From Anolis carolinensis (Eukaryota): DNA of 64,000 nt. The stretch covers positions 364,735,252 to 364,799,251 of the forward strand of contig NC_085841.1 of assembly GCF_035594765.1 (NCBI RefSeq), written 5' to 3'. The position numbers were made by a program, and so were the translations under genes. The notes under the pieces were generated by a model, which saw only the letters and a list, made by a program, of their open reading frames with translations, was not told the DNA's origin and made no database searches. Shown here piece by piece: positions 25,312 to 57,586 of the stretch; positions within the stretch are counted from its first letter, which is position 1, and each line of letters opens with the position of its first letter.

Positions 25312-27749
25312 TTTTATTTGTATTCCGCCCTGTCTCCCCATAGCTGCATTAGTCTGGACTATTATGCATAAAGATCTTGTAACCCCAAGGTACCTTCTAC
25401 ACTGCCATATAATCCAGATTATCAAAGCAGAAAATCCACATGATCTGCTTTGAACTGGATTATCTGAGTCTGCACTGCCATATAATCCAGTTCAAAGCAG
25501 ATAATCTGGATTTTATATGGCAGTGTAGAAGGCGCCTAAATGAGACAAATAAATCAGTAACATAAGGTTTTGTAGTTTTAACAAAACATTCTCATATATC
25601 CATACCAGATCTATTTTCAAGAATATTGCCAGAAAAAGCCTTCCCATGGAAAACATACTCTTTCTATTGGTAATAGATGATGAGAGAGCGTGTCTGGCAC
25701 TGTTATCTATTATGAAAATAGATAGCATAATCCAGGAGTAACAACATCTTACAATCACAAATCCCGGCAGAAGCCACAGAAACGTTATCTCATTGTTTCC
25801 TTCTTTAACCATTGTAGAAAACAGAAGGTATTACTTACAAGGCTGTTTTTCAACAGCATCGATTATATTTTCTATCATGTCTTCCAACTCGACTTCATTA
25901 GCTGATTGAAGAGCTTCTGTGAGATATTTAGCAGCTTCACTAATGGAAGAGAAAAGAAAACTTAGCCAAAATTAGCGATGTGGATAACATGTTAGTCTGG
26001 AACTGGATTACGTGAGTACACTGCCATATACAGTAGAGTCTCGCTTATCCAACATAAACAGACCAGCAGAAAGTAGGATAATAAGGAGGGATTAAGGAAA
26101 TGTCTATTAAACGTCAAATTATGTTATGATTTTACAAATTAAGCACCAAAACATCATGTTTTACAACAAGTCAACAGAAAAAGCAGTTCAATACACAGTA
26201 ACATTATGTAGTAATTACTGTATTTATGAATTTAGCATCAAAACATCACAATGTATTGAAAACATTGACTACAAAAACATTGATTACTAAAACATTGACT
26301 ACAAATAAGGATAGAATTGCACAAAATGAATTTACAGTAACAACATTGTTGGAAGTTAAATCTGTAAAAAGTTCAGTCCTTGCTGTCTACAGAAATAGCT
26401 GTGGATCTGGGCGATATGGAGACTGCGTTGGATAATCCAGAACGTTGGATAAGCAATACTCTACTGTAATTCAGGTTATTAAACTAGATAATGACATGAT
26501 CTGCTTGGAACAGGATTACATGAGTTTACACTGCCGTATCATCCAGATTATTAAATGAAACAATCACACTATCTGCTTGAAACTGGATTACGTGGGTCTA
26601 CACTGCCATATAACCCAGATTATTGAACTAGATAATGACATGATCTTCTTGGAACTGGATTACGTGAGTCTACGATGCCATATAATCCAGAGTATTAAAC
26701 TAGATAATGACCTTCTCGGAACTGGATTACATGAGTTTACACTGCCGTATCATCCAGATTATTAAATGAAACAATCACACTATCTGCTTGAAACTGGATT
26801 ACGTGGGTCTACACTGCCATATAATCCTGATTATTAAACTAAATAATGACATTATCTGCTTGGAACTGGATAATGTGAGTCTACGCTGCCGTATAATCCA
26901 GATTATTAAACTAGATAACGTTATCTGCTCGGAAATTGATTACATTAGTCTACACTACCATAGAATCCAAATTAAACTACATAAAGACATTACCTGCTTG
27001 GAATTGGATTACATGTGTCTACACTGCCATATAATCCACATTATTACACTAAATAATGACATGATCTGCTTGGAACTGGATTATGTGAGTCTACACTGCT
27101 ATATAATCCATATTATTAAACTAAATAATGACATTATCTGCTTGGAACTGGATTACGTGAGTCTACACTGCCATACAATCCAGATTAGTAAACTAGATAA
27201 TGACATTATCTGCTTGGAACTGGATTACGTGAGTCTACACTGCCATACAATCGAGATTAGTAAACTAGATAATGACATTATCTGCTTGGAACTGGATTAC
27301 GTGAGTCTATACTGCTATATAACCCAGATTATTAAACTAGATAATGACATGATCTGCTTGGAACTGGATTACGTGAGTCTATACTGCTATATAACCCAGA
27401 TTATTAAACTAGATAATGACATGATCTGCTTGGAACTGGATTACGTGAGTCTACACTGCCTTTCTGCAGTGTTTCCGAAGCTCTGGCCTTCCAGGCGCTT
27501 TGGACTCCACTTCCCAGAATGCCTTCTCCTTAGCCAAGGTGGCAGAGGCTTCTGGGAAATGCAGTCCAAAAAAACACCTGAGGCCTAGGTTGTAGATGTT
27601 CTCTACACGAAGGCCTTCTTCACTTGCCACGGCCCTGAGCGAGCGGCCCTCCACTCGAACCTGAAGAAAAGAAATACTCACGCGCGGAGAATCAGGCCGT
27701 GCATCTTGAAAGCAGCGCTCACTTTGCCCTTCAGTTTCTCGGCCGCCAT
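4449..27749 (-). CDS. POLE2: DNA polymerase epsilon subunit 2 (accessory B subunit), 19 exons, 527 aa
   Basis: Exons (minus strand, 5'->3'): 27682-27749, 25839-25939, 24323-24398, 23612-23689, 22663-22756, 21491-21565, 21022-21105, 20759-20815, 19721-19769, 18974-19046, 16640-16812, 14434-14523, 13952-14006, 10805-10864, 10644-10721, 10404-10512, 8778-8954, 7127-7194, 4449-4467. They sum to 1584 nt in frame: [22 protein letters not shown]...[10 protein letters not shown]...[11 protein letters not shown]...[11 protein letters not shown]...SKLQGL*. All introns are GT-AG except intron 8 (AT-AC). Confidence 0.97.
9254..9387. mobile_element. hAT-type MITE with 8-bp TSD
   Basis: TIR CAGGCATGGGCAAACTT...AAGTTTACCTATGCCTG flanked by CTATAGAT on both sides (9246-9253, 9388-9395). 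Many relatives occur, e.g. ~2501, 3370, 9019, 13061, 18805, 19910, 29107, 34113, 35229, 38861, 39963, 48909, 50346, 52817, 60746. Confidence 0.88.
11000..12046 (+). mobile_element. Solo LTR (gypsy-like) with 5-bp TSD, containing a CR1 3' fragment (~11326-11417)
   Basis: TGTTG...CAACA ends; TSD CATAA at 10995-10999 and 12047-12051; AATAAA near the 3' end (~11972). Confidence 0.8.
12121..12899 (-). mobile_element. Non-autonomous Helitron with a nested Tc1 MITE (12255-12577)
   Basis: On the minus strand it begins TCTATATATATAAAA and ends with hairpin GCCACAGCAACGCGTGGC followed by CTAG; inserted between A and T with no TSD. Confidence 0.82.
14151..14344. mobile_element. Long near-perfect palindromic hAT MITE in POLE2 intron 12
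   Basis: Self-complementary around GGCCGCTTAAGCGGCC; forward and reverse ORF translations are nearly identical. Confidence 0.88.
15280..15686 (-). mobile_element. Dong/R4-clade non-LTR retrotransposon 3' fragment (restriction-like endonuclease)
   Basis: [33 protein letters not shown]...VVPVV..TLGAVPK...[17 protein letters not shown]; flanked on both sides by (TAA)n. Confidence 0.75.
17101..18232 (+). mobile_element. Solo LTR with 5-bp TSD, nested in a Harbinger-like MITE (~16933-18390)
   Basis: TGTTG...TGACA ends; TSD GTAAT at 17096-17100 and 18233-18237; AATAAA ~18188. The host element has ACACTATGTAAC...GTTACATAGTGT TIRs. Confidence 0.8.
19770..20758 (-). other. POLE2: U12-type (minor spliceosome) AT-AC intron, POLE2 intron 8
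   Basis: 5' splice site ATATCCTTT (complement 20750-20758); branch point CCTTAAC (complement 19780-19786) about 10 nt from a terminal AC (19770-19771); the frame is preserved (ISKA|QFHSG). Confidence 0.95.
22101..22405. mobile_element. PIF/Harbinger-like MITE
   Basis: ACACTATGTAAC / CATAGTGT termini in a TTA context; relatives at ~8440-8750, ~24498-24775 and ~34427-34580. Confidence 0.6.
26467..27460 (+). repeat. 72-bp minisatellite (~13-14 units) in POLE2 intron 1
   Basis: Unit CTGCTTGGAACTGGATTACGTGAGTCTACACTGCCATATAATCCAGATTATTAAACTAGATAATGACATTAT, seen as a 24-aa periodicity in ORF 26788..27588. Confidence 0.92.
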
Positions 27750-28777
27750 TTTTGAACCGTTGGCGCCAACGGTGAGGCCACGCCCCCTTTCCCTTCGCCC
27801 CTTTTCTTCCGGCCACGCCCCTGCCCCTCTGAGGCGATTAAAAGCGGGTTCTTAGTTTTGAAACTCCAACTCCCAGAAGCCTCCGCTGCCTTAACCAATG
27901 AGGAGGCATGCTGGGAATTGAAGTCCTAAGACCTGTAGTGAGAGTTTAGGGAAATTTTGGTTTTATTACCGTAATAACTTGTCAGTCTAGTTGTCATTGT
28001 TTATTATATTTCCATACAGTTATTTATTGGCAGTAACAGAAGGGTTATAGGTCTTAATAATAATAATAATAATAATAAAACTTTATTTATACCCCGCCAC
28101 CATCTCCCCAACGGGGACTCGGGGTCTTGGAAGGTAGAGTCTCACTTATCCAACATAAACGGGCTGGCAAAACGTTGGATAAGCGAATATCTTGGATAAT
28201 AAGGAGGGATTAAGGAAAAGCCTATTAAACATCAAATTAGGTTATGATTTTACAAATTAAGCACCAAAACATCATGTTATACAACAAATGTGACAGAAAA
28301 AGTAGTTCAGTACGCAGTAATGCTATGTAGTAATTACTGTATTTACGAATTTAGCACCAAAATATCACGATGTATTGAAAACATTGACTACAAAAATGCG
28401 TTGGATAATCCAGAACGTTGGATAAGTGAGACTCTACTGTAGCAGCATTCTATTTCCATACAACTATGATATTTATTTCCCACATTCTAAAACCTAGTGG
28501 AGAAGCTGGTTTGGTGTTTGTTTATAATAATAATCATCATCATAACCATAATAATATATTAGTATTATTAGTGACACAAAGATATACAGTAGTATGACTC
28601 AGCAAACGAGATATAATATATTATTAATAATTATTAATATATTATATTATTAATAATATATTATTATTATTTTATTTTATTGAAACCAAAAAAAAAGGAA
28701 AAAAGAATATTCTCGCCAGCCCGATCGTGGTGCGCATGCGTGCCGGGCGCGGTTGCCTAGGCGACGCTATTCCCAAA
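27750..28777. promoter_or_regulatory. POLE2/KLHDC1 divergent promoter region
   Basis: The start codons are about 1.03 kb apart, head-to-head. Motifs: E2F palindrome TTGGCGCCAA 27760-27769 next to CHR-like TTTGAA 27751-27756, CCAAT ~27895, NRF1-like GCGCATGCG ~28732, X-box-like GTTGCCTAGGCGAC ~28752-28765. A Tc1-type MITE and AT-rich DNA split the CpG island. Confidence 0.7.
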
Positions 28778-31700
28778 ATGGCGGCCGCCGCCGGTGCTGC
28801 TCCGCGACTGGAGCCGTTCTGTGTGGCCGAGGAGCGGAGCGGGCACTGCGCCGTGGCGGACGAGGGCTACCTCTACGTGTGGGGGGGATACGTGGTAAGG
28901 AAGAGAGGCAAAACAACAACACATAATTAAAATATTGTTATTTATTACGGCCTGTTCGCTGGCCGCCCGAGTTTACCTCAGGAGCAGAGTGCGCGGGCCA
29001 AGGCTCCAACTCGGTCGCTGATTGGCCCAGGGCTCCTGCCCAGTAGCCACACCCCCTTTATCTGTCTTAAAAGATTGAGCAGGCCTCTCAGGGTTGTGAC
29101 TACAATAGGCATAGGCCAACTTGAACCCTCCAGATGTTTTGGACTACAACTCTCACAATTCCTTGTAGAATTGTGGCAGTAAAAGTCCAAAACATCTGGA
29201 GGGCGCAAGTTGGGCCATGCCTGATCTACACTGTAGATTAGAAGGAATGCAGTTTGACACCGCTTTAAACTGCTCTGGCTCCATGTTATGGAATTGTGGG
29301 AGCTATAGTTTGACAAAAGACCTTAGCTTTCCCTGCCAAGAAGTGTTGATGCTTCACCAAAGAAGGAAAACATGGGTTCACGAAGAAAGGAATAATCAGT
29401 TAGAAGTATTTATTTATTTATTTTATTAATTGTATATTATGTTTATACCCTACTTTCTCTCTCCATATGGAGACTCACAACTGAAAGCATTACAATACAA
29501 CTTAAAATATACAGTTATACAAACAGTATTAAACATAATTAAAAGCCTATAAAATCACAGCAGCCCCTGACGATCTTAAAAGCCTTCTTCTTTAAAAGCC
29601 TGCCTGAATAAAAAGGTTTTAACCTTTCATATTTATATTTGTTACATACAGTAGAGTCTCACTTATCCAAGCCTCGCTTATCCAAGCTTCTGGATTATCC
29701 AAGCCATTTTTGTAGTCAATATTTTCATTACATTGTGATATTTTGGTGCGAAATTCGTAAATACAGTAATTACAACATAACATTACTGTGTATTGAACTA
29801 CTTTTTCTGTTAAATTTGTTGTATAACATGATGTTTTGGTGCTTAATTTGTAAAACCATAACCTAATTTGATGTTTAATAGGCTTTTCCTTAATTCCTCC
29901 TTATTATCCAAGATATTCGCTTATCCAAGCTTCTGTCGGCCTGTTTAGCTTGGATAAGTGAGACTCTACTGTACTTATTTATATTTATTAATAATTTATT
30001 ATTTATTATTTTATTTATTTATAAATATTTATATTTATTATATACTTATATTTATATATAATTATATCTATATATATTTATATTTTTATTTATATGTATA
30101 TGTATATATTAATAATATATTATATTTTAGTGATTTGTATTGTTTATTAATATATTTTCTGAATGTATTCATTAAAAATGTATTATTATTTATTATTATA
30201 TATATTATATGTATTATATACTTATTTATTTATGTATATTATATATTTATATTATATACTTATTTATTTATATTATATTTAGATAATTATATCTATATAT
30301 ATTTACAGTATATTGTATTTATATGTATATATGTATATATTATTAATAATATATTAGCATTTTTAGTTATTTATATTGTTTATTATTTAATTATTTATGT
30401 ATTTTAAATGTTTAAAAATAATATTTGTTGCCATCAGTCTGAAGTGGTGAAGATATACTTTTCCTATGGACAGGCCTGTCCCATCCCACTGATGGCTGTC
30501 TATTATGACAGGGCTTTCATATCACACTGTAACATTGTTTTTAATTGTTTTTTTAACTTTTGCATTGCACTTTTTAAACTTGACTAAAGTGTGGGGTTGT
30601 TAGTTACCTTGAGTCCCCACAGGGAGAAAGGTATAAATAAACTTAATAATAACAGTAATAATAATAATTCACTGGAAGAACTCACCAGTTACACAAACTT
30701 GGACTTGGCTGGCTTTTGCACAGCTCATTCCACTCCTTGATACAAACAGTATTGTGTGTTTTACTTTTGTGTTCTTCAGCAGTCCAGATCACTTGCTCAG
30801 CATTTAAAATTTTGAAATGTTAAATATGTTGCTAGGCTCCTAGAAAACGAATATTTACATCGAAACTAATTAAAATTTATGTGCCCTTTTTTGCTGCAGT
30901 CCGTAGAAGAAAATGAAGTTTATTTGCCCAATGATGAGCTCTGGATTTATGAAATTGACAGTGGATTATGGTAAATCTCATTATTTTCCTTTGTTGTTTG
31001 TATTGCAATGTTTACCACATTTGTAATATTGCAATGGCCAATTTCTGATCACAGATTGTATTGCGAATATCTGATAAAACACAGTGAACCCAGCAATGCT
31101 TATAAGCAACAACCCTGCTGAATGAGATGAATGGAATATATTAGAGTGGTGTATACTGTTCAGTACCTAGAAGAAAAAATATACAGGAAGCCAAGTAGAA
31201 ACCAATGTCTTACACCATTGTTATTGCCAAATTGAAAGATCAGTTAACCATATCTATACGTGTCAAATGCATTGCTTTTATTCATTTGGGTGACTTTTGG
31301 GGTTAGATACCTTCTAAAGTGGTTCTCAGTGGAAAATTGTGACTTGTGTTTGCTGAACTGCAGGTCGATGCACTTAATGGAAGGGGAGCTACCTCCATCC
31401 ATGTCTGGAAGCTGCGGGTCTTGCATTAAGGGAAACTTCTTCCTCTTTGGAGGATTTGACGACAAAGGCTACAGCAATCGGGTACTAGCCCCCTTTGTTT
31501 TTTTAAATCCCTAATAAAGATTAAATACACTCGGGGTACCATGTATATATCAATCTGTGTTTGAACTCATCCCATTGGTTTTAAATAGTTCTCCCTTTCA
31601 GCTGCAAGACCTTCCCCTTGAAATATCACAAAATTCCTTTTAAAGCTTTTGCCCAGTTTCCAAAATGGTTTGCCATGGATGCAGAGTGTGCTGATGCATG

Positions 31701-35342: not shown

Positions 35343-37342
35343 GTAGAGTCTCGCTTATCCAACATAAACGGACCGGTAGAATGTTGGATAAGCAAAAATG
35401 TTGGATAATAAGGAGAGATGTAGTAATTAATGTATTTATGAAATTAGCACCAAAACATCGCAATGTATTGAGAACATTGACTACAAAAACATTGATTACT
35501 AAAAGGCAAACTGCGTTGGATAATCCAGAATGTTGGATAAGCGAATGTTGGATAAGTGAGACTCTACTGTGTATGTATATCTATATATATCCCGATATAT
35601 ATGGTTGTGAATACCAGGGAGAATATCCAGGCAAATAGGCATTTTTCATGAGATGTTAAGGGCGCACCATCTGATTCAACAGAAAAGCAAGAAAGACATG
35701 AAAACTAGAGTGTTGTGCATTAACTTGTGACAGTATTTAGTGGTCAGACACATCTTTTCTTGAGCTGTAAATTAGGAAGCACTGTTTGCAGCCTACTGTT
35801 TGCCTTATTGTTCAGTGAAACTGCAGAACTGAAGGTCCTCTTACAGCTAGCTTCAAGCTAGCTCTCAAGGTGCATCTACGCTGTAGAATTTATCCAGTTT
35901 GATCTTACTTTCACTGCCGTGGCTCCATGCAGTGAAATCCTGGGAGTTGTAGTTTTATAAGGACTTTCAGGATTCTGTGCCATCGAGTACTAGTGCCGCT
36001 CCAAATTACAAATCCCAGGATTCCATAGCATTGAGCCATGGCAGTTAATGTGGTATCACACCGGATGAGTCCATGTATTAGAAGAAAGACAGGATAAAAG
36101 TAAATTAATACAAATGGAAATAAATAAGTGTGGGACCAGACTTTGTTGCCATCATGAGTAAGCAAGCACTCTGTTAGCTAACACTAAGCGGTGGCTTCAG
36201 AACATAGTTCATGGAATCATAGAGTTAGAAGCGACTACATGGGCCATCTAGTCCAACCCCCTGTCATGCAGGAAAAGCACTGTCAAAGTATTCCTGACAG
36301 ATGGCCATCCAGCCTCTGTTTAAAAGCCTCAAGGAAGGAGCTTCCACCAGTCTCCAAGGGAGACAGTTCTACTGCTAAACAGCTCTTCTTACAGTCAGGA
36401 AGTTCTTCCTCATGTTCAGGTGGAATCTCCATTCCGGTAATTTTGTCATTGATAAATGTGTTAATGCTACCGCAGTCATGGTTTTCTTTGTTTCCTGAAT
36501 GATGTCTATTTTGGGCTCTCTTTTTTTGTTACATAGAATTAATACGACTGGAGAGAAACCCAGAAGCAGATCATGGCACACGTTGACCCCTGTAACGGAT
36601 GACAGGCTTTTCCTGTTTGGTGGACTGAGTTCAGACAATGTGCCCTTAAGTAAGTACGTACGTAGTTTGTGCTCAGAATTATTCTTCCCATAAGTTTTTA
36701 TGATGCATTAGAATAATTCACACAAAAAAGGAGAACAAAGAACGGGATGATTTCTGGTTAGTTAATTAGAAACTAATTAACTTGCTCCCACCTCCGTCAC
36801 AAGCGCGGTTGGTGGGGACGAGAGAGAGGGCCTTCTCCGTGGTGGCCCCCCGGCTCTGGAACTCGCTCCCCAGGGAAATCAGGCAAGCCCCCACCCTGGT
36901 AGCATTCAGGAAGAGCTTGAAAACGTGGCTCTTTACTCAGGCCTTTAATTAAAGATTGCTCATCCCCATAGCAATCTGTATCTGTGACCATTCCTGTACT
37001 GGTTTGCACTTTTTACCTTTGTCAACTTGATAAAGACACAGGGTCTATTCCCATCCCAATTTGCACTTCCAAGAATTGGCAGCACTTTATCAGTCACCTC
37101 GTGTTTACAATATTTATATGGTGCACCTTACCCAGTCTACTTTTACAACCTCTCCATTTTAATCCATGTTTTTATTAGTTCTTGTCATTTGTTTTTATTG
37201 GCTAACGTTTAAATTTTTATAATTGTGCATGTTTTTTGTCTATTGTTGTGTTTTATATTGCTATTGTTTTGATTCAGGCTTGGCCCCATGTAAGCCGCCC
37301 TGAGTCCCCTTTGGGGAGATAGAGGCGGGGTATAAAAATAAA

Positions 37343-42785: not shown

Positions 42786-43962
42786 CAGTGCAGGTGGTTC
42801 CGGTGGTGATGGGCACACTGGGTGCCGTGCCAAAAGATCTCAGCCGGCATTTGGAAACAATAGACATTGACAAAATTACGATCTGCCAACTGCAAAAGGC
42901 CACCCTACTGGGATCTGCGCGCATCATCCGAAAATACATCACATAGACACTTGGGAAGTGTTCGACTTATGATTTTGTAATACGAAATCCAGCATATCTA
43001 TCTTGTTTGCTGTGTCATAATAAAATAATAATAGTTTATATTATAATTATTATTACTACTACAACTACTACTCTTCAAGCCTATGGGAATAGCTGATAAC
43101 AAGCACATCTAGCCAAACATTGCTTTAATTTAATGGTAGCTGCTACACAAATTGCATTATTGAGTTTTCTTTTCATTTTTATTAACATTGTTAATATTAT
43201 TATACACAATCTATACTGGCTTGAAATATATACACACGCACACACACACACGCTCAGAGTAGAAGTGTAGACAACCATTCTTTGAAAAAAATCGCTTAAA
43301 TCGACAAATAACTTTTGTTTATTGTGTTCTTGCTCAGGGACACTGCAGTGATTTACTGATTTTTCAGACACAGCCATACTCGCTTCTCAGGTAAGTTGCA
43401 GATAGAGGATGGATGGCATTACATTTCAGTAGCACATCTTCTCCAGGAGGAAACAAGACCCATATGGCCTAGTTTACAGGCATGGGCCAACTTGGGCCCT
43501 CCCTCCAGGTGTTTTGGACTCCAACTCCCAGCATTCCTAACAGCCTCGGGCCCCTTCCTATTCCCCCTTGGCCGCTTAAGCGGCCAAGGGGGAAAAGGAA
43601 AGGGCCCGAGGCTGTTAGGAATGCTGGGAGTTGGAGTCCAAAACACCTGGAGGGAGGGCCCAAGTTGGCCTATGTCTGCTGTATCCCAAGACTGAGAGAA
43701 TAAGGGAAGGGGAGCATATATTTTGATATTTTTATGTTGTCAAAGTGATTTATCCCCCTGTTGTAATGCTGGTATTCTTCCTCCCAGACTTAGCCTCGAC
43801 TGCATTGGCCGAAATGCCATCCTCTTAGAGAGCCAAATGGCTCTCCTTCCACCTCGGCTCCTGGAGGAAGCGCTGGATAAAATCACTTTTTGGTCGGCTG
43901 CAAATTATCGCCAAGAAAAAAAGGCCAAAGCCGAATACCTGGAGGAGACCAGCGCCTCTTAG
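28778..43962 (+). CDS. KLHDC1: Kelch domain-containing protein 1 (CRL substrate receptor), 13 exons, 409 aa
   Basis: Exons: 28778-28894, 30900-30970, 31364-31481, 32501-32619, 33271-33349, 33913-33996, 34241-34324, 34975-35033, 36537-36649, 38206-38278, 41954-42038, 43338-43390, 43788-43962. They sum to 1230 nt in frame and all introns are GT-AG: FCVAEERSGHCAV...YVWGGYV...FWGWHNDVHVFD...RSWHTLTP...QTQPYSLLRLSLDCIG...KITFWSAANYR. Confidence 0.96.
29972..30425. repeat. AT-rich low-complexity tract
   Basis: Almost exclusively A/T with TATT/TATA repeats. Confidence 0.9.
40760..41003. repeat. (TTCC)n/(TTTC)n polypyrimidine tract
   Basis: Direct reading; a purine-rich counterpart lies at ~13345-13555. 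Confidence 0.9.
42785..43030 (+). mobile_element. Dong/R4-clade LINE 3' fragment
   Basis: Same sequence family as 15280-15686; sits within a (TAA)n run. Confidence 0.75.
43477..43678. mobile_element. Long near-perfect palindromic hAT MITE in KLHDC1 intron 12
   Basis: Same family and central GGCCGCTTAAGCGGCC as 14151-14344. Confidence 0.88.
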
Positions 43963-44200: not shown

Positions 44201-45909
44201 GCTAAATATTTAAATGAGGATCCAGAAGGGTTGCTGTGAATTTTTGGGGCTGTATCATCATGTTCCAGCAGCATTCTCTCTCCTAATGTTTCACCTGCAT
44301 ATGTGGCTGGCATTCTCAGAGGTTCTGTTGGCAGGGAGGCAAGTGGAGTGTATATATATCTGTGGAATGTCCTTTTGGAAAATGGAAATCTCCACAACCT
44401 TTTGGAGATTTTTTGACCTTTGGAAAGGCATGACCTTATTAGAAGTCACAACGTTTTGAAAAATGATGCCATAACTTTTTGGGAAAACGGCGTTTGTGCA
44501 AGGCAATTAGGTTTCTCAGCTGTCAAACTGATGTACCAAAATATAATAATAATAATAATAATAATAATAACTTTATTTTTATACCCCGCCCCATCTCCCC
44601 AATGGGGACTCGGAGCGGCTTACATGGGGACCAAGCCCGAAACATACAACAATAAAATGATAAAACAATTATTCCAACAGTAAAACATCAATATATCTCT
44701 TTGAAGTGTTAGGGACAAAGATATGCTAATGCACAAAACACACACACACACACATATATAGCAGAGTTTCAGAAGTGTTCTTTTAAGCTGGCCAAAAAGC
44801 ATCTACTCTCCCTTAAAACATCTTAGATTAAATCATGCTCTCAAGAGACCAAAATAAGCAGGCTTCTTCAAAAGTAACATAGTTGGTTTACTCACAAACT
44901 TCATGTATTCAGCATACAGGTACTTATCAATATAGTTACAGATAGGATTTGAAGTAGTTTTTCTGTAAAAATATTACAGTAGAGTCTGACTTATCCAAGC
45001 TAAACGTGTCAGCAGAAGCTTGGATAAGTGAATATGTTGGATAATAAGGAGGGATTAAGGAAACGCCTATTAAACATCAAATTAGGTTATGATTTTACAA
45101 ATTAAGCACCAAAACATCATGTTATACAACAAATTTGACAGAAAAAGTAATTCAATACGCAGTAATGTTATGTTGTAATTACTGTATTTACGAATTTAGC
45201 ACCAAAATATCATGATGTATTGAAAACATTGACTACAAAAATGGCTTGGATAATCCAGAAGCCTGGATAAGCGAGGCTTGGATAAGTGAGACTCTACTGT
45301 GTGTGTATGTATGTATGTATGTATGTGTGTATATAATGTATGTATACTTTTGCTTATATTTCGAACTCTGTATATATTTCATAACAAGCCATAGCAGACC
45401 GTAAAAAATATTATTCGTAAAGAAAGGTAAAGTCTCTTGATTTCTCCTTGGGCTGCATCCGCACTGTAGGATTAACACAGTCTGATGCCACTTTCAGTAG
45501 CTTGGCAGAAAGTTATGGAATTATTGTAGGAAGGAAAGGATTTTGCGAGGCCAAAAGGAAGGCGAAAGAGAAACTACCGTTTCCAAGATGCCATAATACT
45601 GAGGCATAGCAAGCAAAGCGGGGCTAAAGTGCGTTAATGTTAAAGTGTGGATGTAAAAGGGAGTAACTTGGCCCAGCTTGGATGTGCTTTCCTCGCTGAG
45701 CTCCCTACTTGCCGCCGTGGCGCAGCGCCTCCTGGCGTCGGCGGCGGGGAGAGGCTGTTTTTGGGCGCTGCAGTTGTGCGTCCGGCCGGGAGGAGTCGCT
45801 GCGGAGCGGAGGGAAAATGGCTTGAGGTGAATGGGAAAAGGGACTGAGAGGCGCCCCTATAGGCGCTCTCTCTCTGTTCCGAATGAAAAGGAAGCTCAGC
45901 CGAACGGGC

Positions 45910-46214
45910 AAAAGGTTTGAGGTCGGGTCTGGCTGTCTTGCCCAGGCTGCGCCGTGGCGGCTATTCACGGGCGCGGTCCCGCTACTGGTCGGCGCGGGAG
46001 TTTTGACCTGCTCCGTCTCCGGCCTGGGCCGGTTCACCCCTCCTGAGGCAACCTGGCGGCCCCCGGCTCCCCGCGGGCCCCCATATTGACGCCGGACTTA
46101 GCGCGGACACCCGATCGGCATAGCCCGCCGCGGCCCAGAACTCCTGAGCTCACGCCATCCGCCGCCCTCAGCCTCCGCGCAGCTGGATTACAGGCGCGCG
46201 CCACCGCGCCCGGC
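45910..46214 (-). ncRNA. RN7SL: 7SL / SRP RNA gene, copy A
   Basis: The reverse complement starts GCCGGGCGCGGTGGCGCGCGCCTGTAATCC and contains GGAGTTCTGGGC, CTATGCCGATCGGGTGTCCG, the helix 6 GGAG loop, CAGGTTGCC, GGGGTGAACCGGCCCAGG, helix 8 CCG-GAGA-CGGAGCAGGTCAAAACTCCCG and CAGCCTGGGCAA. It is ~300 nt and ends in a TTTT Pol III terminator. Confidence 0.97.
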
Positions 46215-46830
46215 TGACGGGAGAGCGGCACAAAAGCCTACTTCAGGCAGCAGAGCCGTGACGTCACGGCGAGGGGCGGGGACGGCAGTAAGAAGACACG
46301 CCCACCGCGCCCGGCTGAAGGGAATGGACACCAAGGGTACTGCAGGCGGGAGAAGGGTGACGTCACGGACGGGGGCGGGGACAGCAGTAAGAAGACACGC
46401 CCACCGCGCCCGGCTCAAGAGAAATGGACACAAAGGGTACTGCAGGCAGAAAGGGGTGACGTCACGGACGGGGGCGGGGACAGGAGAGGGAGACACGCCC
46501 ACCGCGCCCGGCTCAAGAGAAATGGACACAAAGGGTACTGCAGGCAGAAGGGGGTGACGTCAAGGACAGGGGCGGGGACAGGAGAGGAAGCCACGCCCAC
46601 CGCGCCCGGCTGAAGGGAATGGACACCAAGGGTACTGCAGGCAGGAGAAGGGTGACGTCACGGACGGGGGCGGGGACAGCAGTAAGAAGCCACGCCCACC
46701 GCGCCCGGCTCAAGAGAAATGGACACAAAGGGTACTGCAGGCAGAAGGGGGTGACGTCACGAGGTGGGAGGGGACAGGAGAGGGAGACACGCCCACCGCG
46801 CCCGGCTCAAGGGAATGGACAGAAAGCGTA
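46215..46830 (-). repeat. Tandem array (~98-bp period) of 7SL promoter modules, each with a CRE, a GC box and the 7SL 5' end
   Basis: Copies of GCCGGGCGCGGTGG (minus strand) start at 46315, 46414, 46512, 46610, 46709 and 46806. TGACGTCA occurs at 46259, 46358, 46457, 46555, 46653 and 46752. Most units also carry GGGGCGGGG. Confidence 0.9.
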
Positions 46831-46842
46831 CTGTAGCCACGC

Positions 46843-46903
<61 letters not shown>

Positions 46904-46940
46904 CCCCGTCTCCCTCGGAGCCTGCGCAGTGGAGACCTAG

Positions 46941-48775
<1,835 letters not shown>

Positions 48776-52658: not shown

Positions 52659-55129
<2,471 letters not shown>

Positions 55130-55434
55130 GCCGGGCGCGGTGGCGCGCGCCTGTAATCCAGCTGCGCGGAGGCTGAGGGCGGCGGATGGCGTGAGCTCAG
55201 GAGTTCTGGGCCGCGGCGGGCTATGCCGATCGGGTGTCCGCGCTAAGTCCGGCGTCAATATGGGGGCCCGCGGGGAGCCGGGGGCCGCCAGGTTGCCTCA
55301 GGAGGGGTGAACCGGCCCAGGCCGGAGACGGAGCAGGTCAAAACTCCCGCGCCGACCAGTAGCGGGACCGCGCCCGTGAATAGCCGCCACGGCGCAGCCT
55401 GGGCAAGACAGCCAGACCCGACCTCAAACCTTTT
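55130..55434 (+). ncRNA. RN7SL: 7SL / SRP RNA gene, copy B
   Basis: Mirror image of 45910-46214 (coordinate sum 101344); GCCGGGCGCGGTGG...CAGCCTGGGCAAGACAGCCAGACCCGACCTC followed by TTTT at 55431-55434. Confidence 0.97.
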
Positions 55435-55989
55435 GCCCGTTCGGCTGAGCTTCCTTTTCATTCGGAACAGAGAGAGAGCGCCTATAGGGGCGCCTCTCAG
55501 TCCCTTTTCCCATTCACCTCAAGCCATTTCCCCTCCGCTCCGCAGCGACTCCTCCCGGCCGGACGCACAACTGCAGCGCCCAAAAACAGCCTCTCCCCGC
55601 CGCCGACGCCAGGAGGCGCTGCGCCACGGCGGCAAGTAGGGAGCTCAGCGAGGAAAGCACATCCAAGCTGGGCCAAGTTACTCCCTTTTACATCCACACT
55701 TTAACATTAACGCACTTTAGCCCCGCTTTGCTTGCTATGCCTCAGTATTATGGCATCTTGGAAACGGTAGTTTCTCTTTCGCCTTCCTTTTGGCCTCGCA
55801 AAATCCTTTCCTTCCTACAATAATTCCATAACTTTCTGCCAAGCTACTGAAAGTGGCATCAAACTGTGTTAATCCTACAGTGCGGATGCAGCCCAAGGAG
55901 AAATCAAGAGACTTTATCTTTCTTTATGAATAATATGAATAATATTTTTAACGGTCTGCTATGGCTTGTATTATGATATATATACAGAG

Positions 55990-56146
55990 NNNNNNNNNNN
56001 NNNNNNNNNNNNNNNNNNNNNNNNNNNNNNNNNNNNNNNNNNNNNNNNNNNNNNNNNNNNNNNNNNNNNNNNNNNNNNNNNNNNNNNNNNNNNNNNNNNN
56101 NNNNNNNNNNNNNNNNNNNNNNNNNNNNNNNNNNNNNNNNNNNNNN
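55990..56146. other. Assembly gap (157 N)
   Basis: Run of N directly at the end of the right arm of the inverted repeat. Confidence 1.
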
Positions 56147-56358: not shown

Positions 56359-57586
56359 CCGTATATACTCAAGTATAAGCTGACCCGAATATAAGCCGAG
56401 GCACTTAATTTTACTACAAAAAAACCTGGGAAAACATTGACTCCAGTATAAGCCAAGATACCAATAAAATTACATTAATTGAGGCATCAGTAGTTTAGAT
56501 GTTTTTGGATCTTTACATCAAACTGTAATTTAAGATATGACTGTTCAACTCTGATTAAATCATTATTTTCACCTTCTTCAATGTATCCTTTTAATAATAA
56601 TATAGTGAAATAATAAATGTAATAATAATAATAAATGCGGTGAAATAATAAATGTAATAATAAATGCAGTAAAATAATAAATATATTAATAATAATAAAA
56701 ACAGAGTAAAATAAATGTAATAGTAACAACAATAATAGAGTAAAATAATAACTGTAATAATAATAAATGCAGTAAAATAATATATGTATTAATAATAATA
56801 AAAACAGAGTAAAATAAATGTAAAAGTAACAACAATAATAGAGTAAAATAATAACTGTAATAATAATAAATGCAGTAAAATAATAAATGTATTAATAATA
56901 ATAAAAATAGAGTAAAATAAATGTAAAAGTAACAACAATAATAGAGTAAAATAATAACTGTAATAATAATAAATGCAGTAAAATAATAAATGTATTAATA
57001 ATAATAAAAATAGAGTAAAATAAATGTAAAAGTAACAACAATAATAGAGTAAAATAATAACTGTAATAATAATAAATGCAGTAAAATAATAAATGTATTA
57101 ATAATAATAAAAATAGAGTAAAATAAATGTAAAAGTAACAACAATAATAGAGTAAAATAATAACTGTAATAATAATAAATGCAGTAAAATAATAAATGTA
57201 TTAATAATAATAAAAATAGAGTAAAATAAATGTAATAGTAACAACAATAATATAGTAAAATAATAAATGTAATAATAATAATAATAATAATAATAAATGC
57301 AGTAAATAATAAATGTTATAATAAATAGAGTAAAATAATAAATGTATTATTAATAATAAAAATAGCGTAAAATAAATGTAAAAGTAACAACAATAATAGA
57401 ATAAAATAATAAATGTAACAATACCAATAATAATAGAGAAACATAATAAATATACCATATATGCTTGAGTATAAGCCGACCTGAATATAAGCCCACCAGG
57501 ACCCTCACCCGAGTATAAGCCGAGGAGGTTTTTTTTCAGTCCTAAAAAAGGGCTGAAAAACTAGGCTTATACTCGAGTATATACAG
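56359..57586. mobile_element. Tc1/pogo-like non-autonomous element with an internal 103-bp AT-rich tandem repeat
   Basis: TIRs CCGTATATACTC.AGTATAAGC / GCTTATACTCGAGTATATACAG flanked by TA; the internal unit repeats at 56761, 56864, 56967, 57070 and 57173. Confidence 0.8.

Follow-up and report, generated by a model that had tools for sequence, protein, structure and literature searches.

The window analysed here, a 64,000-nucleotide stretch of Anolis carolinensis DNA (contig NC_085841.1 of assembly GCF_035594765.1), holds two mirrored copies, or arms, of a gene pair in which a 7SL (SRP RNA) gene and RPS29 are transcribed away from one another (Table 1). 7SL RNA is among the most abundant of Pol III transcripts, and the 7SL promoter serves as the textbook example of Pol II activators being used by a Pol III gene. 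In both arms under 1 kb separates the divergent genes, and the interval is a CpG island with a GC content of 0.67 and a CpG o/e of 0.81–0.82. Exons 1 and 2 of RPS29 translate as expected, the protein search having been made with a query of exon 2 (33 aa) extended by seven in-frame intron codons. The distance from 7SL +1 to the RPS29 ATG is 864 bp in the left arm and 652 bp in the right. An early idea that the arms stand apart by exactly four units of the repeat described below was dropped, since the intergenic lengths differ by 212 bp and the right arm contains long units.

Table 1. Genes, promoter units and related features of the two arms (positions are those of the window)
Feature	Position	Strand	Remarks
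7SL (SRP RNA) gene, left arm	45917–46214	minus	+1 = 46214; Rfam RF00017 (Metazoa_SRP) full length, 237.7 bits, model 1–299
7SL gene, right arm	55130–55427	plus	+1 = 55130; Rfam RF00017 full length, 237.7 bits
T4 terminator of left 7SL	45910–45913	minus	A-run on plus strand
TTTT at -18..-21 of left 7SL	46232–46235	minus	7SL-sense strand
TTTT at -18..-21 of right 7SL	55109–55112	plus	7SL-sense strand; lies in R1
Left pseudo-starts (+1)	46315, 46414, 46512, 46610, 46709, 46806	minus	six copies of the 7SL start
RPS29 exon 1 coding part, left	47079–47140	plus	ATG 47079; GT at 47141
RPS29 exon 2, left	47247–47346	plus	RPS29 protein matches, E ~1e-16
RPS29 exon 1, right	54416–54477	minus	start at 54477
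RPS29 exon 2, right	54210–54309	minus	
Candidate RPS29 exon 3 coding part, left	48767–48775	plus	Leu-Asp-stop; inside inverted repeat I5
Candidate RPS29 exon 3, right	52659–52667	minus	inverted-repeat mirror of 48767–48775
L1, working 7SL upstream promoter	46215–46315	minus	101 bp; CRE 46259–46266, GC box 46273–46281; ends in pseudo-start 1 (46302–46315)
L2–L6	46316–46806	minus	99, 98, 98, 99, 97 bp; each with CTGCAGTA, CRE, GC box (degenerate in L6), CACGCCC box, 14-nt 7SL start
L7, old long unit	46807–46952		146 bp; CRE/GC part deleted, (CT)24 inserted, RPS29-start-like piece retained
L8, true left RPS29 core promoter and 5'UTR	46953–47078	plus	GC box, GCGCCTGCGC palindrome-like site, polypyrimidine start region
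R1	55029–55129	plus	full pseudo-start 55029–55042
R2, long form	54883–55028		146 bp; TATA-like box, CRE, GGGAGGGG, CACGCCC, RPS29-start-like piece, 9-nt partial 7SL start
R3 and R4	54645–54882		115 and 123 bp; older, more diverged; perfect CRE in each; R4 ends in a degenerate 7SL-start remnant
R5, true right RPS29 promoter	54478–54644	minus	

Near-identity and dissimilarity alternate along the two arms. From beyond the 3' end of 7SL through the CRE of the second unit (45408–46367 against 54977–55936) they are 99% identical, and across RPS29 exon 1, intron 1 and exon 2 the identity is complete (inverted repeat I3, 100% over 281 nt). Between these tracts the arms are structurally unlike, and they diverge also in intron 2 and in transposon content. 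Because tracts of 99–100% identity alternate with a diverged array, a diverged intron 2 and different transposons, the arms evidently go back to a genuine, old inverted duplication that gene conversion has evened out in patches, and do not reflect an assembly fold-back. The same pattern weighs against a more general worry, namely that the number of units or the inverted duplication itself is a product of mis-assembly. Tandem arrays and palindromes are indeed error-prone in assemblies, and a run of Ns (55990–56146) begins only 54 nt outside the end of the right arm; on the other hand, the repeat units are distinguishable mosaics of two subtypes rather than identical copies, and we regard an artefact as very improbable. 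Looking up a spurious 218-aa ORF that runs across the array, for independent assemblies of the same allele, found none on record.

Several other repeats lie in or near the arms. Beyond the N run comes an AT-rich tandem array of 6.4 copies of a 103-bp unit (56655–57312, 97% matches). Inverted copies (88%) of a CTTATCCAAC-rich repeat, at 44968–45308 / 47826–48166 and at 47523–47742, flank the left block of 7SL and RPS29 exons 1–2, and intron 2 of the right arm holds a different, reverse-transcriptase-like insertion. Elsewhere in the window are a 72-bp x 14 tandem array (26467–27460, 84% matches), a palindrome with 101-nt arms that are 96% complementary and have no spacer (43477–43678, within transposon-like sequence), and, on the minus strand at 839–1552, a DNAAF2-like ORF with a PIH1 N-terminal domain (E = 5.7e-42).

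The intergenic region of the left arm is occupied for most of its length by a single tandem array (TRF: 46201–46833, period 98, 6.4 copies, 87% matches, score 856), whose head-to-tail units are of minisatellite size (10–100+ bp). A preliminary description of this DNA had placed 98-bp units carrying the 7SL start between 7SL and RPS29, and TRF and Rfam agree on that arrangement; its further statement that the arms are unequal in module number holds at the level of sequence, TRF giving 2.1 copies on the right. This gap in copy number between paralogous arms is a record of instability over evolutionary time only. GCCGGGCGCGGTGG, the opening 14 nt of 7SL, has seven copies on the left arm's minus strand (one real start and six pseudo-starts) and two in the right arm (the real start and a pseudo-start at 55029), as compared with zero in 100 shuffles. 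A 14-mer with one mismatch at 28742 was rejected as a chance match within another CpG-island promoter; that promoter (28700–28860) has a start codon, and a kelch-type, KLHDC1/2-like exon lies further on (36499–36693).

The motifs upstream of these starts repeat with them. The CRE octamer TGACGTCA is present six times in the left arm and four times in the right, and nowhere else in the 64 kb, where 0.31 would be expected. Relative to the real starts it lies at -52/-45, and relative to five left pseudo-starts and the one on the right it lies at -50/-43; the sixth on the left (46806) has none. Five of the six left CREs are adjoined by the GC box GGGGCGGGG; L6, R2 and R3 have a degenerate form of this box (GGGAGGGG), and R4 lacks it. 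A TATA-like box reads CTGAAGTA at -32/-25 of the real starts and CTGCAGTA at -30/-23 in the units, matching the mammalian consensus CTCTAGTA at 6/8 positions; this block is identical in all nine distinct units, and its distance from the CRE is the same in the units as in the real promoter. The order and spacing of GC box, CRE, TATA-like box and start thus stay within 2 nt of those of the real promoter, in keeping with the earlier view that the array derives from this very promoter. On the right, the count is one full pseudo-start, a partial one of 9 nt (GCCGGGCGC, at the end of R2) and four CREs. Motif by motif, these positions reproduce the counts first reported for both arms, including the six left pseudo-starts, five of them with a perfect CRE upstream and mostly a GC box. 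The high CpG o/e of the promoter islands (~0.8 in both, as against 0.32 in the flank) further argues that the CREs sit in DNA that is unmethylated in the germline.

When both intergenic regions are cut at the real and pseudo-starts, the resulting units fall into short and long forms. L1 and R1 are identical in sequence. The short left units belong to two subtypes, A (L2 and L5, 98% alike) and B (L3, L4 and L6, 95–96% alike), which follow one another from L2 to L6 as A-B-B-A-B and have mosaic variants in common, an arrangement that points to several rounds of unequal exchange. The long units tell of an earlier stage that the preliminary description had missed. R2, R4 and L7 carry an extra ~47 nt absent from the short units, made up of a polypyrimidine run followed by a GGAGCCTGCGCAG-type segment, and this piece resembles the real RPS29 start region; L7 is identical to right-arm positions 54701–54671 at 30 of 31 letters. 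The presence of an RPS29-start-like piece in the long units implies that the whole bidirectional promoter was duplicated. Consistent with this, R2 is collinear from end to end with the entire 7SL–RPS29 intergenic region of Crotalus horridus and of Lacerta agilis, from which it follows that the original duplicated unit was that whole promoter, and the 98-bp units are shortened forms of an older unit of ~146 bp. Dinucleotide runs of opposite polarity are seen at different places in the two promoters, (CT)24 in L7 (46853–46901) and a GA run in R5 (54600–54630), both given in the RPS29 sense.

What the units have kept, and what they have lost, is best judged against the known 7SL promoter. In mammals it combines a TATA-like box at -31/-24 with a CRE at -51/-44 and Sp1 sites at -90/-52 (PMC7279448; architecture in PMC8362101), and has within the gene a box A at about +12 to +22, together with a box B (PMC7279448). 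TFIIIC bound to boxes A and B recruits TFIIIB (PMC7279448, PMC8362101). These internal boxes are weak and depend strongly on the 5' flank (PMC7279448). This is the hybrid architecture that the preliminary description had invoked, correctly (PMC7279448, PMC8362101), and the real anole 7SL promoter appears to be an ordinary member of the class. The same description had called the units complete modules of promoter and start site. Its upstream elements and its start are indeed there; completeness is not, for likeness to 7SL ends at +14 in the units, and box A and all that lies downstream are absent. RF00017 follows the real starts, while the six left pseudo-starts and the one on the right match 14 nt of the gene only. 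Across positions +12 to +22 the units have 4/11 letters in common with the real box A, the junction leaving only the first three bases of that box, and downstream of the unit starts nothing corresponds to the 7SL box B. The repeat units accordingly lack two defining features of the hybrid class, the gene and the internal boxes, and stand outside it.

By the TFIIIC-dependent mechanism described for 7SL, the units are to be seen as upstream half-promoters, not complete ones. This assignment is made because 7SL similarity is lost after +14, and not from a scan with tRNA-type box A/B consensus sequences, in which the real 7SL boxes themselves show 2–4 mismatches, so that the scan does not discriminate. 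The poor match of the real boxes also means that such a scan leaves room for internal-promoter activity in the units, which counts against the explanation that we favour below. With everything past +14 missing, boxes A and B included, the units are most likely not independent Pol III genes.

A reading in which the pseudo-starts are nonetheless live Pol III starts would have TFIIIB and Pol III brought in by the upstream elements alone, boxes A and B playing no part, with the production of short RNAs or the handing of polymerase to 7SL, in the manner of the spacer promoters of frog rDNA. In the case of short RNAs it predicts a ladder of ~84, 183, 281... nt ending at the TTTT at -18..-21 of 7SL. 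This T4 is found in both arms and is the sole one between the pseudo-starts and 7SL on that strand, just before the real start; Crotalus, Lacerta and the birds show none at the corresponding position. It could serve to stop Pol III arriving from upstream, or could be there by chance, and a T4 within ~100 nt of such composition is not very improbable by chance. (A bacterial promoter/terminator scan also returned a weak hairpin and T-run at 46248–46236; the bacterial model is irrelevant here.) Live starts would suit the spacing of CRE, TATA-like box and start, which departs from that of the real promoter by no more than 2 nt, and also the weakness of the 7SL internal boxes and their reliance on the 5' flank. 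The end of 7SL similarity at +14 and the need for TFIIIC on boxes A and B to recruit TFIIIB speak against them, and we consider live pseudo-starts unlikely.

We compared annotated RPS29 loci reached through RPS29 protein matches, none of them taken for human, the squamates with an informative promoter being Crotalus horridus and Lacerta agilis; Thamnophis, with an N gap at the promoter, and Python, whose contig begins at the gene, were left out of the promoter comparison. The rattlesnake has 183 bp between 7SL +1 and the ATG, holding one module with one perfect CRE at -52/-45 and an exact CTCTAGTA at -31/-24, and no tandem repeat; the lacertid has 177 bp and likewise one module, with no perfect CRE and one imperfect one. 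In three birds (L014:2687–3004 of GCA_013399295.1, L015:2718–3004 of GCA_013397725.1 and L016:2738–3004 of GCA_013396775.1) the interval is ~266–317 bp, and each has four perfect CREs within 190 bp of 7SL, where 0.02 would be expected per locus. These CREs, spaced ~35–58 bp apart, align across the three species amid spacers that have diverged, which suggests selection for several CREs at the 7SL/RPS29 promoter. A fourth bird has 191 bp, with one perfect CRE, one near-CRE and no repeat noted. Finally, a mammal-like locus (L008, from CM036950.1 of GCA_020826845.1), judged non-human from its V-variant RPS29 and its different TATA-like box, has 404 bp with two perfect CREs and an 84-bp x 2.4 tandem repeat (L008:3621–3826), the units of which contain a TATA-like box, a CRE or near-CRE, and GC boxes, and no second 7SL start.

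The pairing of 7SL with RPS29 is thus common to the sauropsid loci and the one mammal-like locus examined. No 7SL was found beside RPS29 in six fish- or frog-like loci, which for this reason were unusable as promoter outgroups. The repeated 7SL 14-mer was found in no other locus of the comparison set (Crotalus, Lacerta, the birds and the mammal-like assembly), and among the loci compared a start site inside the repeat unit is confined to the anole. In this comparison the multiplied module is not ancestral, and CREs have been multiplied independently, with unit lengths that differ. The multi-CRE arrangements of the birds and of the mammal-like locus, conserved or recurrent, lend plausibility to a role for the number of CREs; the copy-number rheostat suggested in the preliminary description, in which output would follow the number of units, goes further than these arrangements show.

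Taken together, these results lead us to an explanation that we hold to be slightly better than evenly probable, namely a lineage-specific tandem amplification by unequal exchange, the units of which would supply both real promoters with additional CREB/ATF and Sp1/KLF sites. The ancestral state is one module of ~180 bp, as in the rattlesnake and the lacertid. In the anole lineage the whole module was first duplicated, the copied stretch running from around +9 of 7SL to a point shortly beyond the RPS29 start, to give ~146-bp units, and a derivative shortened by a 47-nt deletion (98 bp) was then multiplied on the left side; the mechanism in this account is unequal exchange or replication slippage at the bidirectional CpG-island promoter. 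Removal of the 47 nt joins the G-run of the GGGGGCGTG box to GCCGGGCGC and so yields 13/14 letters of the 7SL start; the perfect 14-mer would presumably have come from one further substitution or by conversion from the real gene. The units would most likely form a homotypic cluster of unmethylated CREB/ATF and Sp1/KLF sites feeding both real promoters, with the left gene pair receiving more sites than the right. The sequences themselves show how the array is built and how it arose, which motifs it has, that the internal elements are missing, that the array is specific to its lineage and that multi-CRE promoters recur in other amniotes. We infer factor binding and an effect on output from the integrity of the motifs in R3 and R4, the CpG-island state and the multi-CRE promoters found elsewhere.

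A neutral origin has to be weighed against this on the same observations. Here the GC-rich, recombination-prone CpG island would simply have stuttered, the motifs being harmless passengers with no measurable effect on 7SL or RPS29, a reading that we hold to be possible but doubtful. The left units are young, being 95–98% alike within subtypes, so that their retained motifs need no selection; set against this, the old and diverged R3 and R4 still have perfect 8/8 CREs. Similarly, Crotalus and Lacerta manage with one module, and that an imperfect CRE suffices in the lacertid counts against our favoured explanation; yet multiplied CREs arose independently and were kept across three birds despite diverged spacers. 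The 7SL genes and RPS29 exons 1–2 are identical in the two arms despite their unlike arrays, as a neutral array would allow. Palindromic CREs in unmethylated islands are as a rule occupied, which is hard to square with motifs as mere passengers. The motif-specific test of conservation is a weak one: columns invariant among the nine distinct units form three blocks (TATA-like, CRE and CACGCCC), which speaks for the proposed extra sites; their clustering is only weakly significant (P = 0.016 for the sum of squared run lengths, 0.12 for the longest run) and could also have been produced by recent common descent of the units, which tells against those sites. Finally, mutation of the CRE lowers human 7SL transcription only 2.5-fold in vitro (PMC7279448), and extra distal CREs may therefore add little, which favours the neutral reading and counts against the amplified sites that we propose.

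Under either reading a single anole genome contains, at this locus, a natural allelic series, in which an identical pair of 7SL genes and a pair of RPS29 genes with identical exons 1–2 are combined with different numbers of half-promoters. It makes testable the question of whether the dosage of CRE and Sp1 sites governs how strongly a Pol III gene and the Pol II gene divergent from it are expressed, and also that of whether the external half of the promoter can act alone. Live pseudo-starts, if they were real, would correspond, for Pol III, to the spacer promoters of rDNA, and would amount to a natural experiment on how much of the 7SL promoter is external. More broadly, the single module of the snake and the lacertid, the four CREs of birds, the 84-bp repeat of the mammal-like locus and the 98–146-bp repeats of the anole suggest that CRE multiplication at the 7SL/RPS29 promoter is a recurrent evolutionary outcome. 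In the literature searched, coverage of which is incomplete, we found no description of repeated 7SL promoter modules or of the multi-CRE arrangement of birds.

How, then, does this locus compare with known systems? The real anole promoter resembles the mammalian 7SL hybrid promoter in its CRE at -52/-45, its xxxAAGTA box at -32/-25, its GC box at about -60/-68 and the conserved 7SL sequence from +1. It departs from mammalian descriptions, which give one module (PMC7279448), in that the upstream part together with +1 to +14 has six repeats in the left arm and about one in the right; these keep the upstream part of the mammalian promoter with the same spacing and are without box A, box B and the gene. 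With the multi-CRE promoters of the birds and the mammal-like assembly the anole has in common the gene pair and the set of CRE and GC boxes multiplied upstream of 7SL, while their units are shorter (~35–58 bp and 84 bp), never include the 7SL start and arose separately. In function the array would appear closest to promoter minisatellites and, in frog rDNA, to spacer promoters and enhancer repeats. Like promoter minisatellites (VNTRs), the anole units are ~100 bp long, run head to tail, carry putative factor sites and differ in number between paralogous arms; the defining feature of VNTRs is polymorphism among individuals, whereas the anole array is known from one assembly. In the rDNA intergenic spacers of Xenopus, which are transcribed by Pol I, tandem promoter copies that include the start site precede the real promoter and are thought to concentrate factors or polymerase. 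The anole copies are likewise in tandem, upstream of their own gene's promoter and inclusive of its start site; they differ in being copies, of putative activity, of a bidirectional Pol III/Pol II promoter shared with a protein-coding gene.
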